From Obrimoposthia wandeli (Eukaryota), in the NCBI GenBank assembly GCA_977020255.1, contig CDROCS010000253.1:2914001-2978000 (forward strand): DNA of 64,000 nucleotides. Reading direction: 5' to 3'. Below the pieces are notes generated by a model. The model was given only the letters and a program-made list of their open reading frames with translations, was not told the origin of the DNA and searched no databases. A program made the translations under genes and the position numbers. Of the stretch, positions 1,199 through 64,000 are shown in pieces. The number at the start of each line of letters is the position of its first letter. Position 1 is the stretch's first letter.

Positions 1199-2239
1199 TT
1201 ATGCAAAAACAACAGGCTCTTCACCGTCAGCTTTATCAGCGATTTCGCCAATGTGCCAAGCATTTTCGCCATGTGCTGTTAATATTTCAATACTCTGCGC
1301 TACTTTATCAGCGGGTACTACGATAACCATGCCAACACCACAGTTGAACGTGCGGTACATTTCATGTTCAGTAATGTTGCCGTTTTCTTGTAACCAGTTA
1401 AATATGCTCGGCCATTGCCAGCTATCACCTTTAATAACAGCTTGTGCTGTTTCAGGTAATACACGTGGGATATTTTCCCAGAAGCCACCACCAGTGATAT
1501 GAGAAAGTGCATGCACATCTACATTTTTAAGTAACTCAAGCACAGATTTTACATAAATCTTTGTTGGTTCAAGTAAATGGTCAGCAATTTTCTTGCCTTC
1601 AAGTAATTCATTAGTATCAGTATTGTTTACTTCTAATACTTTACGAATTAAAGAGAAACCATTTGAATGTGGACCTGAAGCACCAAGTGCAATCAGTTGA
1701 TCGCCAGCAGCAACGTTAGTACCGTCAATTAAACGAGACTTTTCAGCTACGCCCACACAAAAACCAGCGATATCGTAATCGCCTTTGTGGTACATACCTG
1801 GCATTTCTGCAGTTTCACCACCAACAAGAGCACAACCTGCTTGAATACAACCTTCAGCAATACCTTCAACCACAGATGATGCAACAGCAATATCCAGTTT
1901 CGCTGTAGCATAATAATCAAGGAAGAATAAAGGCTCTGCACCTTGTACGATAAGATCGTTAACACACATAGCAACTAAGTCGATACCAACGGTATCGTGC
2001 TTAGCTAGATCAATAGCTAAACGTAATTTAGTGCCTACACCGTCGGTACCTGCAACTAAAACAGGTTCTTTATAACCTGTAGGTAATTGACATACCGAAC
2101 CAAAACCACCTAGACCACCCATAACTTCTGGACGTGTTGTACGCTTTACCGCACCTTTAATGTTTTCTACTAGGGCATTACCAGCATCAATATCAACACC
2201 AGCATCTTTATAGCTTAACGACTGTTTTTGTTCGCTCAC
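1199..2239 (-). CDS. purM: Phosphoribosylformylglycinamidine cyclo-ligase (AIR synthase)
   Basis: [38 protein letters not shown]. Confidence 0.99.
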
Positions 2240-2279
2240 GGGAGACCTCAGAAATTACTGACAGTATTTAAAGGGGCGT

Positions 2280-2308
2280 ATTCTACCAGCGCTAAGGCTC
2301 ATACTCAA
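2280..2308 (-). promoter_or_regulatory. Probable sigma70 promoter of purM
   Basis: Minus strand TTGAGT-N17-TAGAAT about 40 nt upstream of the purM start. Confidence 0.6.
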
Positions 2309-2449
2309 GGCGATAAACAGTATCTTCGGTTAGTTTTATTTTATTGGCGTATTTCCAAGGAATTTATTCAGTTTTGCGGGTATTAATTGCTGACAATGTG
2401 GTAAGATAATACATATAAAATCATAGAGTTTTTAAAGTTTTCAACAGAT

Positions 2450-3862
2450 ATGTTTAGATTTTCCTTTATATTAATTATGCTGGTATTTTCGTTACTTAGC
2501 GCTAGTTTAGCAGCCCTTGAAGTAAATGATCTGTACCAAGCCAATGTTGTCGTCGACTCGCAAGCTCGAGAGCAACGTGAACAAGCAATAAAAAAAGCAC
2601 TGCAAAGTGTGTTTTTAAAAGTCGGCGGTAAAAAAAGTGTGTTAACACATGATGTGTTGAAAAAGGCACAAAAAAGAGCCAGTCGCTATATTAGTCAATA
2701 TCGGTATCAACGAAAAGATGAAGAGCTAAGTTTGGTCGTTAGCTTCAATGAAGACAAAGTAAACCAATTATTTAAAGAAGCGGATCTTGCCTTATGGGGG
2801 AGTTTACGCCCACAAGTACTTTTATGGTTAATTGATGAAGAAGGCACAAGCCGCACTATAATAGCTTCTGATGCCGATACTACTATCATTACAAGTATCA
2901 ATGACTTCTCAATACAACGTGGTTTACCTATTGTTATGCCTTTAATGGACTTAACAGATAATGAACAAGTGGTATTAAGTGACTTTTGGGGCTATTTTTC
3001 TGAGCAAATACAGCAAGCTTCACAGCGCTATTCTGCCGACACTATTGTGGTGATGAGGGTTTCAAATTCGAGCTTAGTTATCGAGACTGAGCAAAATGAA
3101 ATATCTATCGCCTCAGATAATACTTCCTGTGGCTTGTTATGTGAACAGCAAGAGATTGTTATCCCTAAAGCGTTAGATTGGCGTGTTTTCACCCAAGGCA
3201 CCATCTATACTCAACAATACCAAGGTATTGATAAAGTCAGTTTGATTGCACAGGGCTTATCTGATATTACCGAATTAATCTATCAATCCTATGCGTTATC
3301 CACAACAGCTGAAAATGATTTTGTTATTGAAGTTAACAATGTCACCTCATTGAAAAGTGACACACAATTATTTGATTTTTTAACGGACTTATCAGCGGTT
3401 AAAGCCGTCACTTTAATGAGTGCCCAAGGTGATGTTCGTCAATTCAAATTAGAGTTAATTGGTTCAAAAGCTTCCTTTTTAGCTTCATTAAAACTAAATA
3501 ATAAGTTAACGCAACAACTTGATAGTCAACTCGATGGCTTTTCTCATGCTCAGCAATTCAATAATCAGCATCTTGCAGGAGGAAATTTCAATAGCCATAA
3601 TCCAATAAAAGTGATTGTTTTAGGCGCTGTTGATATTGAGGAAGACGCACTTGAAAACCCACAAACGAATTTAAACGATAATGAAGGTCGCCTAGATAAT
3701 AGTATCTCTGTGACTAACCCTACGGCAGAGGACAGCAGTAATTTTAATGCTAACTCTGCCGATGAACTTACCAAGAATGACCAATTGCAAACATTAACTG
3801 AAACAAAAAAAACACTTACCATGATACCAAAAATTCCCGTTTTTTATTGGGAGCAAGGATGA
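2450..3862 (+). CDS. DUF2066 family periplasmic protein
   Basis: Signal peptide, DLYQA...AL..VFLKVGG, WGSLRPQVLLWL, LPIVMPLMDLTD; purM-DUF2066-hda synteny. Confidence 0.85.
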   Translation: MFRFSFILIMLVFSLLSASLAALEVNDLYQANVVVDSQAREQREQAIKKALQSVFLKVGGKKSVLTHDVLKKAQKRASRYISQYRYQRKDEELSLVVSFNEDKVNQLFKEADLALWGSLRPQVLLWLIDEEGTSRTIIASDADTTIITSINDFSIQRGLPIVMPLMDLTDNEQVVLSDFWGYFSEQIQQASQRYSADTIVVMRVSNSSLVIETEQNEISIASDNTSCGLLCEQQEIVIPKALDWRVFTQGTIYTQQYQGIDKVSLIAQGLSDITELIYQSYALSTTAENDFVIEVNNVTSLKSDTQLFDFLTDLSAVKAVTLMSAQGDVRQFKLELIGSKASFLASLKLNNKLTQQLDSQLDGFSHAQQFNNQHLAGGNFNSHNPIKVIVLGAVDIEEDALENPQTNLNDNEGRLDNSISVTNPTAEDSSNFNANSADELTKNDQLQTLTETKKTLTMIPKIPVFYWEQG

Positions 3863-4566
3863 AGCAAGTTGCTCAATTAACCTTGATGGTGCAATTACCT
3901 GATGATGAAACGTTTGATAGTTTTAAAAGTGACATTAATCAGGGGATTGTTAGTCAATTAAAATCCTTTATAGAATCAAAGCAAGAAACGCCGCACAGTC
4001 TTTATTTGTTTGGCTTGACGAGTGTTGGTAAATCTCACTTAATGCATGCAAGTAGTGCTTATGCTGCGAAAATTGGAAAATCTTCCGTATGTTTATCTTG
4101 TGCAGAGTTAAAACAATTACCGGTAGAAGTCTTAGATGGCTTAGAGCAAATTGATTTAATCTGTTTAGATGATATTCATTTGATTGCGGGCGATATACGC
4201 TGGCAACAAGCTATTTTTGATTTATATAATAGGGTGCTTGAACAGAATAATTTCTTATTAATTTCAGGTGATGAAAGTGCTCAACAGTTAGGTATAACCT
4301 TGCCTGATTTAGTCTCAAGGCTTACTTGGGGGTTAACTGAGCAGGTTAAGCCACTTGAGGATGAAGAGAAGGTTGTTGCTTTGCAGCACCGTGCCACGCA
4401 ACGAGGTTTGATTTTATCCGATGAAGTGGTAAAATTTTTACTCAATCGTTTGAGCCGAGATATGGGCAGTTTAATCAACTCACTCGATGTTTTAGATAAA
4501 GCTTCTATTCAAGAGCAAAGAAAAATTACCATTCCTTTTATCAAGGAAGTACTAACGCTTCAATAG
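3859..4566 (+). CDS. hda: DnaA regulatory inactivator Hda
   Basis: AQLTLMVQLPDDETFDSF, degenerate Walker A (GLTSVGKSHL), DLVSRLTWG, LDKASIQEQRKITIPFIKEVL. ATG 3859 overlaps the upstream stop (ATGA). Confidence 0.95.
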   Translation: MKQVAQLTLMVQLPDDETFDSFKSDINQGIVSQLKSFIESKQETPHSLYLFGLTSVGKSHLMHASSAYAAKIGKSSVCLSCAELKQLPVEVLDGLEQIDLICLDDIHLIAGDIRWQQAIFDLYNRVLEQNNFLLISGDESAQQLGITLPDLVSRLTWGLTEQVKPLEDEEKVVALQHRATQRGLILSDEVVKFLLNRLSRDMGSLINSLDVLDKASIQEQRKITIPFIKEVLTLQ

Positions 4567-4609
4567 CTTCCTGAAACATGGCGTTAAAATTGAGCTAAGT
4601 AGTCTCTAT

Positions 4610-4649
4610 AATATAAAAAACGCGATTATTTAATCGCGTTTTTTATATT
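4610..4649. terminator. Bidirectional intrinsic terminator
   Basis: AATATAAAAAACGCGATT...AATCGCGTTTTTTATATT between convergent genes. Confidence 0.85.
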
Positions 4650-4705
4650 TGTCTCGATCTGAAGTTAATTAAGTAAATAAGCCGATCAATAACATACAGT
4701 AGGCT

Positions 4706-58585: not shown

Positions 58586-59434
58586 TTATATTTCCTGATA
58601 ACCAAGCAGAGGCAGGGTATTGAAAAAACGTAATTGATAGTCAGTTTTTTGATTATCACTTTTTGTTCTTATCGATAAAGCGATACGGTGTTCTTGTTTT
58701 TCATCAATGGCAGCCGTTGGGTAAACTAACCAGCTACGCCAAATTTGTGGTTCATCGACTCTGTGCTCAGCAAAGCTTAGGCTAATATCCTGCTTGATAG
58801 TAAATAGGTCATTATGATTATGCTCTGTATCGTTGATTTTAAAACTAAAATCAGTGAGCGGTATCGCTAATCCTAAACCCCAAGCTTTGATATAAGATTC
58901 TTTTAAGGTCCAATAATCAAAAAATCGATTACGTTGTTGCGCTTCTGGCAGTGCGAAAAGTTCATTACTTTCTTTAGGTGAAAAATAACGTTCAGCAATT
59001 GCTAATACATTATTATTGCGGCCGGTGTTTTCAACATCACAACCGATATCATCTTCAAGTGTCACTGCACAAATAATGAGGCTCTTTGTATGGCTGATGT
59101 TAAAGCGCAGCGGTAGTGGGCAATTAATCACTTCAGGTTTATCTTTATTACCTTTTTCAAACTGCCAATCTTGCGGGGCTACCTCAGCATAATAAGATAA
59201 TAAATCACGTACGAAAGCGCGAGTAATCAAGGCATCGTGTCTGTCTTTAGCGAATTTATATCGTTGCTGCTTGGCTAACTCTGTACTCGTGAGTAATGTT
59301 GAATAAGTTGATAATAGCTCATCATTACCGAGTAACTCCTCCGGTTTGGTCACCCATATATGAATTTCATTGGTAGAAAGGTCGAGCTTTTCTTTTGATC
59401 GTGCGGAAAGTTCAGATTGAGAAAAAGAGGTCAT
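58586..59434 (-). CDS. pfaE: 4'-phosphopantetheinyl transferase (Sfp-type) of the PUFA synthase
   Basis: FNISHT, IGCDVE, FFDYWTLKESYIKAWGLGL; next to pfaR/pfaA. Confidence 0.93.
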   Translation of the reverse strand: MTSFSQSELSARSKEKLDLSTNEIHIWVTKPEELLGNDELLSTYSTLLTSTELAKQQRYKFAKDRHDALITRAFVRDLLSYYAEVAPQDWQFEKGNKDKPEVINCPLPLRFNISHTKSLIICAVTLEDDIGCDVENTGRNNNVLAIAERYFSPKESNELFALPEAQQRNRFFDYWTLKESYIKAWGLGLAIPLTDFSFKINDTEHNHNDLFTIKQDISLSFAEHRVDEPQIWRSWLVYPTAAIDEKQEHRIALSIRTKSDNQKTDYQLRFFNTLPLLGYQEI

Positions 59435-59774
59435 AAAAGTATCGGTAGCTTGTGTTGTTGATTTATTGCGTGGTTCATCTGGTGAGGCAATATTTTATCA
59501 TAAACAGTGCAGGGGGTAATTCGTTTTTATGATTTTTTTAAGTTGTTTGATTTAGCGCAAACCCGCTGTTTGTCATTAGTGATAGCAATTAATACTAATT
59601 CTTTCGTAATAGAACCTATTTATAGATAACTGGTGGAACAGTTAAACTCATACCTTAGTCTATAAATTGGTAAAGCTTGTATCGGGTGATTGTATTGGAT
59701 TTGAAACGTGTGTATATTAGCCGCGTTAAGTAATTTACGAATAATTATTGATGACAAATATTAGACGGATGAAA

Positions 59775-60623
59775 ATGAGCAAGCAACCAAAAACGGCATC
59801 TACTCAACACGCTAACGCAACGACTACACCAGAGATGAGAGCATTCATCCATGAATCTGATCTACCCACGGCTGTGCTTGCACGGTTATTAAAGGTGTCA
59901 GAATCTACCATCCGTAAATGGCGTAAACGAGCCTCTCTCGCTGATGCGTCTCATGTTCCAAAGCAACTCAATACCACCTTAAGTGAAGCACAAGAGTATG
60001 TTGTGGTTGAGCTTCGAACACGCTTATTACTTTCTCTTGATGAATTGTTGGTTGTCTGTAAATCATTTATTAATGCCAGTGTATCGCGAGCAGGCTTACA
60101 GCGATGTTTAAAGCGTCACGGTGTTTCTCGCCTTGCAGACATGGAAAATAATGGTGAGAGCAGCAATGCAGACGATACAAGCGCTGCAGAACCAACAACA
60201 GTGCAAGTATTGTTAGAAGATACCCAAGAACACCAGCAACTTATTTCAGATCTCTCTCCTAAAGCAATGCGTGAAGTGTTAAATCGCGCTAACGATTTAA
60301 GTGAAGATGAAGTCGTACAAGTCAAAGTGACTCAAATACCTTATTTTTCAGAAAATGCTAAAGAACAACACAGTAAACGCCACTTATTAATCGCCAATGA
60401 CCCTACGTCAGGTTGGGTATATGTCGATATTTACGATGGTAATGAAAGTGAAGCCGCTAGCCGTTATATGAGCTACGTACTCACCAAAGCCCCTTTTCAT
60501 ATCCGCCGAATTTTAGCGGGAAATTATAATGAATTTTTAAGTCGTTTTCGTTTATTAAATGAAAGTCCAGATGAGGCAACAACATTGTTCTCATCAAAAA
60601 ACTTTCACGGCACTGATACTTAA
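59775..60623 (+). CDS. pfaR: PfaR-type transcriptional regulator; IS481-transposase-derived HTH plus a dead RNase H-like fragment
   Basis: HANATTTPEMR...RKWRKR...GLQRCLKRHGVSRL; position between pfaE and pfaA as in Shewanella/Colwellia pfa loci. Confidence 0.8.
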   Translation: MSKQPKTASTQHANATTTPEMRAFIHESDLPTAVLARLLKVSESTIRKWRKRASLADASHVPKQLNTTLSEAQEYVVVELRTRLLLSLDELLVVCKSFINASVSRAGLQRCLKRHGVSRLADMENNGESSNADDTSAAEPTTVQVLLEDTQEHQQLISDLSPKAMREVLNRANDLSEDEVVQVKVTQIPYFSENAKEQHSKRHLLIANDPTSGWVYVDIYDGNESEAASRYMSYVLTKAPFHIRRILAGNYNEFLSRFRLLNESPDEATTLFSSKNFHGTDT

Positions 60624-60686: not shown

Positions 60687-63600
60687 ATGGCTAAAAAGCA
60701 AAGTACATCTAATAACCCTGTAACGAATGAAGCAGACGAAAAAGCGTTTAATTCTCGTCTTCAAGAATGTCCTATTGCCATTGTTGGCATGGCGTCTATC
60801 TTTGCTGATGCAAAGAATTTAGAAAACTACTGGGACAACATTTTCGAATCAGTCGATGCAATTAAAGATGTACCCAGTGATCGTTGGGCAAAAGATGATT
60901 ATTACTCGAGCGATCCAAAAGAGGCTGATAAAACCTATTGTAAACGTGGTGGTTTCTTACCAGAAATAGACTTCGACCCAATGGAATTTGGTTTGCCACC
61001 AAACATTTTAGAGTTAACTGATATCGCTCAGCTATTGTCTTTAGTGGTTGCACGTGAAGTATTAAACGATGCAGGTATTGGTGATGGCTCTGGTTACGAT
61101 CGTGACAAAGTAGGTATTACGTTAGGTGTAGGTGGTGGACAGAAACAAATTTCGCCATTAACGTCTCGCTTGCAAGGCCCAGTATTAGAGAAAGTATTAA
61201 AAGCGTCAGGTGTTGAAGAAGCTGATCGCGCCATGATCATTGAAAAGTTCAAAAAGGCCTATATCGGTTGGGAAGAAAACTCATTCCCAGGCATGTTAGG
61301 CAATGTTATTTCTGGTCGTATTGCTAACCGTTTTGATTTTGGTGGTACTAACTGTGTTGTTGATGCTGCTTGTGCAGGCTCGCTTGCTGCAATCAAACTG
61401 GCGATTTCTGATTTACTTGAGCACAGATCTGAAGTAATGATCTCTGGTGGCGTTTGTTGTGACAATTCACCATTTATGTATATGTCATTTTCAAAAACTC
61501 CTGCTTTTACAACAGGTGAAGACATTCGCCCATTTGATAATGATTCAAAAGGTATGATGATAGGTGAAGGCATCGGGATGATGGCTTTCAAGCGTTTGGA
61601 AGATGCAGAACGTGATGGTGATAAAGTTTACGCCGTGCTTAAAGGTATTGGTACTTCAAGCGATGGTCGCTTTAAGTCAATTTATGCGCCACGCCCAGAT
61701 GGTCAAGCTAAAGCGCTAAAGCGTGCTTATGAAGATGCAGGCTTTGATCCAAAAAGCTGTGGCATGATTGAAGCGCATGGTACTGGTACTAAAGCAGGTG
61801 ACGCAGCAGAATTTGGCGGCTTAGTTAAACACTTCTCTCAAGATAACGAACAAAAGCAACATATCGCTTTAGGCTCTGTTAAGTCTCAAATTGGTCACGC
61901 TAAAGCAGCCGCTGGCGCAGCAGGTATGATAAAAGCGGTATTAGCGCTTCATCATAAAGTGCTACCAGCAACACTACATATCGACCAGCCTAATACCTCG
62001 TTAGACATTGAAAACAGTCCAATGTATTTAAATAGCGAAACACGTCCTTGGATGGCACGTGAAGATGGTTTACCACGTCGCGCAGGTGTCAGTTCGTTTG
62101 GTTTTGGTGGTACTAACTACCACATGGTATTAGAAGAATACTCGCCAAAAGCACAAGGCCAGTATCGCTTAAATGCAGTGCCACAAACACTTATAGTTAC
62201 AGCGGCTAACGAACAAGCATTAGTGAGTTCATTAACGGATTGGAAAACTAAATTAAGTGTGAAAGCAGATGATCAACCCTATGCTTTTAACGCCTTAGTT
62301 GTTGAAAACACGTTAACGACACCTGCAGTTGATTTAGCTCGCTGTGGTTTTGTTGCAAAAAATGCTGATGAAGCAATCAAAATGATTGAAGGTGCTTTGA
62401 AGCAATTTCAAGCCAAATCAAGCAGTGCCGTTCCTTGTGAAGAATGGTCAGTGCCAACGGGTATTTATTACCGTAAGTCTGGCTTGTCAGTTAGCGGAAA
62501 AGTGGTTGCGTTATTCTCTGGTCAAGGCTCACAATACGTAAATATGGGCCGCGAGCTTGCTTGTAACTTCCCAAGCGTAATGCAAGCTGCTGCAGATATG
62601 GATAGTGAGTTTACACAAGCAGGTTTAGGTCAATTAACCCCGACAACGTATCCAATTCCTGTATTTAGTGATGATGCACGTAAAGCGCAAGATGAAGTTT
62701 TACGTTTAACCCAACACGCACAACCTGCAATTGGCACTTTAAGTGTTGGTCTATATAAAGCGTTTACTAATGCCGGTTTTAAGGCAGACTTTACTGCGGG
62801 GCATAGCTTTGGTGAATTAACCGCTCTTTGGGCTGCTGGTGTAGTAAGTGATAGTGACTATATGATGTTAGCACGTAGTCGTGGTCAAGCAATGGCAGCA
62901 CCTACAGGTGAGGCTGCAGAAGGGTTCGATGCGGGCACTATGATTGCCGTTGTCGGTAGTCCAACTGATATTGCTAATGATATTAAAGACATCAAAGATA
63001 TCTCTATTGCAAACTACAACTCTAATAACCAAGTAGTTGTTGCTGGTGTAAGCACTCAAATAGCAATCGCTATCGATGAGCTAAAAGGCAAAGGCTATAA
63101 AGTCGTACCATTACCAGTGTCTGCCGCGTTCCATACGCCACTTGTGGGCCATGCTCAAAAACCATTTAGCGATGCTATCGATAACGCTAAATTTAATAAG
63201 CCTCTTGTACCTGTTTATTCAAATGGCACGGCAAAAGCGCATTCAAATAAAGCTGCGGATATTAAAAAATCACTGAAAAACCATATTTTGGAGTCAGTGC
63301 ACTTTAACGAAGAAATTGACAATATTTACGCTGATGGCGGACGAGTATTTGTTGAATTCGGTCCTAAAAATGTATTAACCAAGCTTGTTGAAAATATCTT
63401 AAAAGATAAAGAAGACGTTGTTGCTATTGCCGTAAATGCTAATCCCAAGAAATCGGCTGATATGCAAATGCGTCAAGCGGCAGTGCAAATGGCGGTACTT
63501 GGTTTAGAACTTACAGAGATTGACCCGTATTCAGCAGTTAAACGTCCATTATCTGCACCTAAAATGTCACCACTAGCAATGAAGCTAACTGGCGCATCTT

Positions 63601-64000
63601 ATGTTAGCCCTAAAACTAAAAAAGCATTTGATGATGCACTAAATGACGGATGGACAATTAAACAAGCAACGTCAGTACCTGTTGCTGTGCCTGAGCCACA
63701 TGTGGTTGAAAAAATTGTTGAGAGAATCGTTGAAGTAGAACGCATTGTTGAAGTTGAGAAAATTGTTTACCTCAACTCTGACGGAACCGCTGCAGATGGT
63801 AGTCAAGTTACTGCACCAATAACAAGTAATGCGAACGATGTAGCAAATAGTATTGAACGTAGCGTTAGTCAGTTTGTTGATCACCAACAGCAGTTATTAA
63901 ACGTACATGAGCAATATATGCAAGGTCCAAAAGACTACGCAAAAACCTTTGATGCAGTACTTAGTACTCAAGAAGCAGGTGAGTTACCTGAAAGCCTAGA
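60687..64000 (+). CDS. pfaA: Omega-3 PUFA synthase subunit PfaA (KS and MAT domains seen; truncated by the window edge)
   Basis: Manual translation: PIAIVGMASIF, DAACAGS (KS Cys), EAHGTGT, GHSFG (AT Ser), AFHT. Absent from the ORF track, presumably because no stop falls in the window. Confidence 0.96.
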   Translation, partial: MAKKQSTSNNPVTNEADEKAFNSRLQECPIAIVGMASIFADAKNLENYWDNIFESVDAIKDVPSDRWAKDDYYSSDPKEADKTYCKRGGFLPEIDFDPMEFGLPPNILELTDIAQLLSLVVAREVLNDAGIGDGSGYDRDKVGITLGVGGGQKQISPLTSRLQGPVLEKVLKASGVEEADRAMIIEKFKKAYIGWEENSFPGMLGNVISGRIANRFDFGGTNCVVDAACAGSLAAIKLAISDLLEHRSEVMISGGVCCDNSPFMYMSFSKTPAFTTGEDIRPFDNDSKGMMIGEGIGMMAFKRLEDAERDGDKVYAVLKGIGTSSDGRFKSIYAPRPDGQAKALKRAYEDAGFDPKSCGMIEAHGTGTKAGDAAEFGGLVKHFSQDNEQKQHIALGSVKSQIGHAKAAAGAAGMIKAVLALHHKVLPATLHIDQPNTSLDIENSPMYLNSETRPWMAREDGLPRRAGVSSFGFGGTNYHMVLEEYSPKAQGQYRLNAVPQTLIVTAANEQALVSSLTDWKTKLSVKADDQPYAFNALVVENTLTTPAVDLARCGFVAKNADEAIKMIEGALKQFQAKSSSAVPCEEWSVPTGIYYRKSGLSVSGKVVALFSGQGSQYVNMGRELACNFPSVMQAAADMDSEFTQAGLGQLTPTTYPIPVFSDDARKAQDEVLRLTQHAQPAIGTLSVGLYKAFTNAGFKADFTAGHSFGELTALWAAGVVSDSDYMMLARSRGQAMAAPTGEAAEGFDAGTMIAVVGSPTDIANDIKDIKDISIANYNSNNQVVVAGVSTQIAIAIDELKGKGYKVVPLPVSAAFHTPLVGHAQKPFSDAIDNAKFNKPLVPVYSNGTAKAHSNKAADIKKSLKNHILESVHFNEEIDNIYADGGRVFVEFGPKNVLTKLVENILKDKEDVVAIAVNANPKKSADMQMRQAAVQMAVLGLELTEIDPYSAVKRPLSAPKMSPLAMKLTGASYVSPKTKKAFDDALNDGWTIKQATSVPVAVPEPHVVEKIVERIVEVERIVEVEKIVYLNSDGTAADGSQVTAPITSNANDVANSIERSVSQFVDHQQQLLNVHEQYMQGPKDYAKTFDAVLSTQEAGELPESL
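63705..63770 (+). repeat. VE(K/R)I peptide repeat in the PfaA post-MAT linker
   Basis: Encodes VEKIVERIVEVERIVEVEKIVY. Confidence 0.8.

Follow-up and report, generated by a model that had tools for sequence, protein, structure and literature searches.

IS481-family transposases, such as those of the ISGlo3, ISRme14 and ISKpn27 types (NCBIfam NF033577), carry a catalytic Asp-Asp-Glu (DDE) triad. DDE transposases bind the ends of their own elements through N-terminal helix-turn-helix (HTH) domains. In eukaryotes, transcription factors derived from DDE transposases are well established, and some bind sites derived from transposon ends (for example, SETMAR with Hsmar1 ends). Elements of the IS481 family can also lie directly in front of host-useful genes. 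In one of the plasmid records examined here (L013, positions 1435-3624), an intact, mobile ISKpn27 with the DDE triad sits directly upstream of, and in the same direction as, blaKPC-2, to which the IS supplies promoter activity.

The regulation of PfaR-type omega-3 (EPA/DHA) synthase genes is poorly understood. A gene named pfaR precedes pfaA in Colwellia psychrerythraea 34H and in Shewanella. Wan et al. 2016 modeled PfaR on the phage Mu transposase (14% identity), stated that it lacks the DDE residues, and described it as an inactive transposase-like regulator rather than a transposase. They named neither IS481 nor any relic end. Allemann and Allen 2020 wrote that PfaR matches no class of regulators, while the title of Wei et al. 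2023 (Appl Environ Microbiol 89:e0002123) calls it a positive transcription regulator. The general idea of a transposase-like regulator is therefore not new. We found the IS481 assignment and the relic end described below in none of the papers that could be searched, and no searchable paper mentions both IS481 and pfaA. The family assignment, the single origin, the selection data and above all the conserved relic end appear to be new.

The locus analyzed here lies in a 64,000-nt window (positions 2,914,001 to 2,978,000 of contig CDROCS010000253.1, assembly GCA_977020255.1; 38% G+C). The assembly comprises 1.35 Gb in 6,912 contigs, and its IS481-profile hits are mostly long integrase-type open reading frames (ORFs). 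In contrast, this contig is at least 2.98 Mb long and its proteins are closest to Colwellia. It looks like a bacterial associate or contaminant assembled with a eukaryotic genome. The pfaR ORF (59775-60623, + strand) encodes 282 aa from the ATG, with in-frame alternative starts at TTG 59748 and ATG 59751 and 59769. Divergently transcribed upstream is pfaE, encoding a 4'-phosphopantetheinyl transferase (58586-59434, - strand). The 5' part of pfaA, encoding the ketosynthase-led PUFA synthase subunit (60687-64000, + strand), starts 63 nt after the pfaR stop and runs off the window. The encoded PfaR is 92% identical to a C. psychrerythraea protein and occupies the same position before pfaA, so the ORF is the gene that the literature calls pfaR.

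Homology of PfaR to IS481-family transposases

A preliminary description, made from the sequence alone, had proposed that PfaR is a domesticated, catalytically dead IS481-family transposase. The observation behind this proposal was confirmed. NF033577 (transpos_IS481) matched residues 25-259 against profile positions 9-208 of 284 at an E value of 4.8e-25. The score of 88.6 bits is far below the curated family cut-off of 224, which shows homology but not membership among functional IS481 transposases. A tblastn search against plasmids returned 1,359 records, the best of which were annotated IS481-family transposases with 33-40% identity over residues 12-258 (88% of the protein) and E values down to 5e-34. 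The closest living transposase in this search was from a Desulfotalea plasmid. In contrast, Pfam alone gave only sub-threshold HTH hits, which is why public annotation calls the protein "HTH domain-containing", although JGI annotation calls some homologues "transposase-like protein". As a control, genuine IS481 transposases hit Pfam rve and rve_3, while PfaR does not.

In an alignment with four annotated transposases (a Desulfotalea element and ISGlo3, ISRme14 and ISKpn27 types), all of the sequence blocks cited in the preliminary description lined up, and the order of domains was the same. The N-terminal bipartite HTH/winged-helix DNA-binding region (59808-60149, residues 12-125) is 55% identical to the ISGlo3 transposase, and the first half of the RNase-H core is 31% identical. 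A remnant of the RNase-H-like catalytic core follows at 60315-60560 (residues 181-262). As had been claimed, Lys184 (60324-60326) replaces the first catalytic Asp and Gly249 (60519-60521) replaces the second, and the protein ends before the Glu helix, with the strand-5 and Glu-helix part deleted. The linker between the two regions (60150-60314, residues 126-180) was described as an acidic insertion of about 65 aa. Here, the acidic linker spans about 56 aa (residues 126-181; 13 Asp/Glu against 3 Lys/Arg), with a net insertion of about 35-39 aa relative to IS481 transposases.

Structural comparisons fit the sequence evidence but add little. An AlphaFold model built on 62 sequences (pLDDT 80) predicts two helical DNA-binding subdomains, a less confident linker, and a partial RNase-H-like sheet with two helices. 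Foldseek searches with the whole model gave only borderline hits, to TnsB (E = 1.1e-3) and, lower down, to IstA, Mos1 and MuA. A wider structural search gave Z scores of 5-6.8 for winged-helix domains, Tc3 and IstA N-termini, and, over residues 175-263, retroviral integrase cores, all below the level regarded as safe. Sequence searches of the PDB with either the single protein or the profile found nothing. A homodimer prediction for residues 126-282, run without the alignment, gave a score of 0.00 at a fold pLDDT of about 36 and is not evidence either way.

Conservation of pfaR and selection on the protein

PfaR is encoded once in the whole assembly and once in each of three complete genomes of relatives, which show no other IS481-like match. 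A scan of one genome per species returned 80 loci in Colwellia, Psychromonas, Shewanella, Parashewanella, Motilimonas, Spongiibacteraceae, other Gammaproteobacteria and three Desulfocapsaceae assemblies, thus spanning two phyla. In 78 of the 80 loci pfaA follows directly on the same strand, and the other two are cut by contig ends. The reading frame is intact in all 80, including locus L023. None of the 80 homologues has an Asp at the second catalytic position or a Glu at the third. One shows an Asp in the first column, presumably an alignment effect. About 30 of 45 IS481 representatives keep the triad.

In a maximum-likelihood tree with these 45 representatives, the pfaA-linked proteins form one clade (SH-aLRT 94). 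Adding two basal metagenomic lineages (proteins P0126 and P0127), which also sit upstream of pfaA-like synthases but lack the acidic insert, raises support to 100. The proteins of the three Desulfocapsaceae (Thermodesulfobacteriota) assemblies, whose loci (L055, L056 and L058) carry pfaR, the conserved box described below and pfaA, branch as the supported sister group of the Psychromonas proteins inside an otherwise gammaproteobacterial clade, which points to transfer of the whole module between phyla. Loss of the triad is not confined to PfaR. An IS481 homologue without it (P0183, 358 aa; locus L179, positions 3628-4704) sits directly upstream of, and in the same direction as, a putA-like proline dehydrogenase/aldehyde dehydrogenase gene and may be a second, independent domestication. 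A well-supported small clade of IS481-like proteins, plus one singleton (P0238, P0250, P0261, P0266 and P0139), also lack the triad and are not next to pfaA where context was visible.

Pairwise Nei-Gojobori dN/dS over the whole protein was 0.02-0.20 in 22 pairs, at synonymous divergences of 0.3-2.7 where measurable. By region, dN/dS was 0.01-0.12 in the DNA-binding region, 0.03-0.21 in the linker for all but one pair (0.39), and 0.01-0.36 in the RNase-H remnant, and it approached 0.2-0.6 only in the last 20 residues. Together, these results point to a single, old domestication with the whole protein still under selection. Identity of synonymous codons between orthologues rises from about 0.50 in the 5' half to 0.73-0.84 in the last 50 codons (60450-60620) and reaches 0.84 in the last 20, and synonymous divergence is two- to fourfold lower there than in the DNA-binding region. 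This suggests additional DNA- or RNA-level function at the 3' end, perhaps an embedded pfaA promoter or RNA element.

A conserved box upstream of pfaR resembling IS481 ends

The preliminary description reported no IS ends, which is only half right. A search for flanking inverted repeats around the gene gave only chance-level pairs of 10-15 nt. However, an alignment of the pfaE-pfaR spacer among Colwellia species showed a block at 59679-59725 that is nearly invariant while the rest of the spacer has diverged. Three further short blocks are conserved among Colwellia species, at 59492-59504, 59628-59641 and 59652-59667, beginning ATTTTATCATAAA, AACTGG and ACCTTAGTC, respectively. The first 19 bases of the main block (box 1, 59679-59697, + strand) recur upstream of pfaR, always on the coding strand, in almost every genus, as well as in both basal lineages.

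To test an IS origin, 80 IS481 elements were retrieved from metagenomes, their ends were located, and a position matrix was built from 91 distinct ends. Box 1 corresponds to positions 7-25 of these ends. With that part of the matrix, the box ranked first of 127,964 positions on both strands of the window. The equivalent box ranked first in 56 of 79 related loci of about 10 kb each and in the top five in 74 of 79. One natural IS end and one Shewanella box are identical at 18 of 19 positions. The full 27-nt matrix, which includes the outer TGT, picked out the box in Shewanella-type loci but not in the window, as the outer bases are not kept in Colwellia. In living elements the outer end lies 88-104 nt before the ORF start. 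Similarly, the box lies 87-108 nt before the conserved His motif in Psychromonas and Desulfocapsaceae and 129 nt before it in the window, although box-to-gene spacing varies from 87 to 370 nt among lineages. Twelve upstream regions of pfaA-like genes from genomes in which no PfaR was found had no comparable box (best score, 3.2 bits, against a minimum of 13.3 bits in PfaR loci). As this box matrix was trained on PfaR loci, the control is partly circular; only the IS-derived matrix is an independent test there, and its separation is weaker.

A promoter-like element, read by eye, overlaps box 1 (59690-59718). It consists of TTGTAT (59690-59695, inside the box), a 17-nt spacer and TATATT (59713-59718), and a -10-like hexamer at the same offset is conserved in other genera. 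The region between the left end and the ORF in real IS481 elements shows no promoter geometry shared with pfaR. A weaker direct copy of the box (box 2, 59439-59457, + strand) lies next to the pfaE start codon and is conserved within one Colwellia group, while Shewanella loci carry their second box about 125 nt downstream of the main one. No terminator-like site lies between pfaR and pfaA, and contigs from RNA libraries of three studies bridge the junction. However, these contigs come from related strains and cannot prove a single transcript, and the zero depth over 59501-59634 may simply reflect sequence divergence. One such contig (run X2) lacks 17 nt at the pfaR stop and intergenic junction (60615 region), which is probably strain variation.

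Origin and inferred function of PfaR

Our data support the interpretation that PfaR is a domesticated transposase. The outcomes named in advance as evidence against it were not observed: the match extends well beyond a generic HTH into the RNase-H remnant, and the gene is single copy with no pair of inverted repeats. What the analysis shows is that PfaR descends from the transposase of an IS481-family element that landed just upstream of pfaA in an ancestor of the PfaR-type pfa loci. The element was immobilized by replacement of both catalytic aspartates and loss of the 3' third of the gene, with the Glu helix and the right end. The DNA-binding region, a partial RNase-H-like domain and the inner 19 bp of the left terminal repeat were kept under selection, the repeat on its original strand and, in several lineages, at its original distance from the coding sequence. 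The remainder is inferred, including binding of PfaR to DNA and its control of pfa transcription. We infer that PfaR uses the end-binding domain of the transposase to bind the relic end (box 1, and probably box 2) and thereby controls transcription of pfaR and, through read-through or a promoter inside the pfaR 3' end, of pfaA and the genes after it. The effect is probably positive, although this rests only on the title of Wei et al. 2023. The RNase-H remnant probably serves multimerization or a partner contact rather than catalysis. The proposal in the preliminary description that the operator descends from IS ends gains direct sequence support from the conserved relic left end. In contrast, Allemann and Allen reported, as data not shown, that deletion of pfaR in Shewanella piezotolerans WP3 did not change EPA content. 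Overall, we consider this explanation likely.

Alternatively, PfaR could be a transposase-derived regulator while the box is only the pfaR promoter or the site of another factor, its likeness to IS481 ends being an inherited leftover. PfaR would then act elsewhere, for example inside its own 3' end in front of pfaA. The -35- and -10-like hexamers and the constraint at the pfaR 3' end are consistent with this, and another regulator, PfaF, controls pfa genes in Photobacterium. However, a bare -35 hexamer does not explain 19 conserved bases across lineages whose PfaR proteins are only about 41% identical. Furthermore, the box co-occurs with PfaR and is missing from the PfaR-less pfaA-like loci examined, and the putative end-binding domain is the best conserved part of the protein. 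We therefore regard this alternative as possible but unlikely.

Two other readings are very unlikely. A decaying IS remnant without host function, kept because it lies beside essential pfa genes or because its DNA carries the pfaA promoter, would agree with the WP3 deletion, the loss of the catalytic residues and 3' part, and the DNA-level constraint at the 3' end. It is contradicted by the selection data, and the intact reading frames, the single clade with fixed synteny across two phyla and the title of Wei et al. 2023 also speak against it. In the second reading, PfaR would be a truncated-transposase inhibitor that damps transposition of IS481 relatives rather than a regulator of fatty-acid genes. 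Truncated transposases that keep the DNA-binding domain act as transposition inhibitors in other IS families, and PfaR keeps this domain. However, no IS481 copies were found in the three complete PfaR-bearing genomes, and an inhibitor role would not explain the strict linkage to pfaA.

Compared with living IS481 elements, PfaR lacks the DDE triad, the Glu helix and the right end, carries an acidic insert, and is single copy in a fixed place. Relative to ISKpn27 upstream of blaKPC-2, a living parallel to the proposed ancestral state, it represents the fixed, dead end-state of such an arrangement. As with SETMAR and Hsmar1 ends, a transposase DNA-binding domain would be reused for gene control together with sequence from the element's own ends, but PfaR is bacterial and IS-derived and would form a single cis-trans pair at one locus rather than a dispersed network of sites. 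It is somewhat more likely than not that PfaR and box 1 are a transposase and its own terminal repeat, tamed together. If so, both halves of the protein-DNA recognition pair of an insertion sequence were turned into a transcription factor and its operator and then spread with the pfaR-pfaA module across genera and into another phylum. Our literature searches for bacterial transcription factors derived from DDE transposases returned none. Recognition of PfaR as an IS481 derivative predicts a precise 19-bp candidate operator, amenable to mutation, and explains why pfaR is always attached to pfaA. More widely, a clean bacterial example in which the end of the element also survives as a conserved cis element would be a useful model of how insertion sequences become regulatory circuits.
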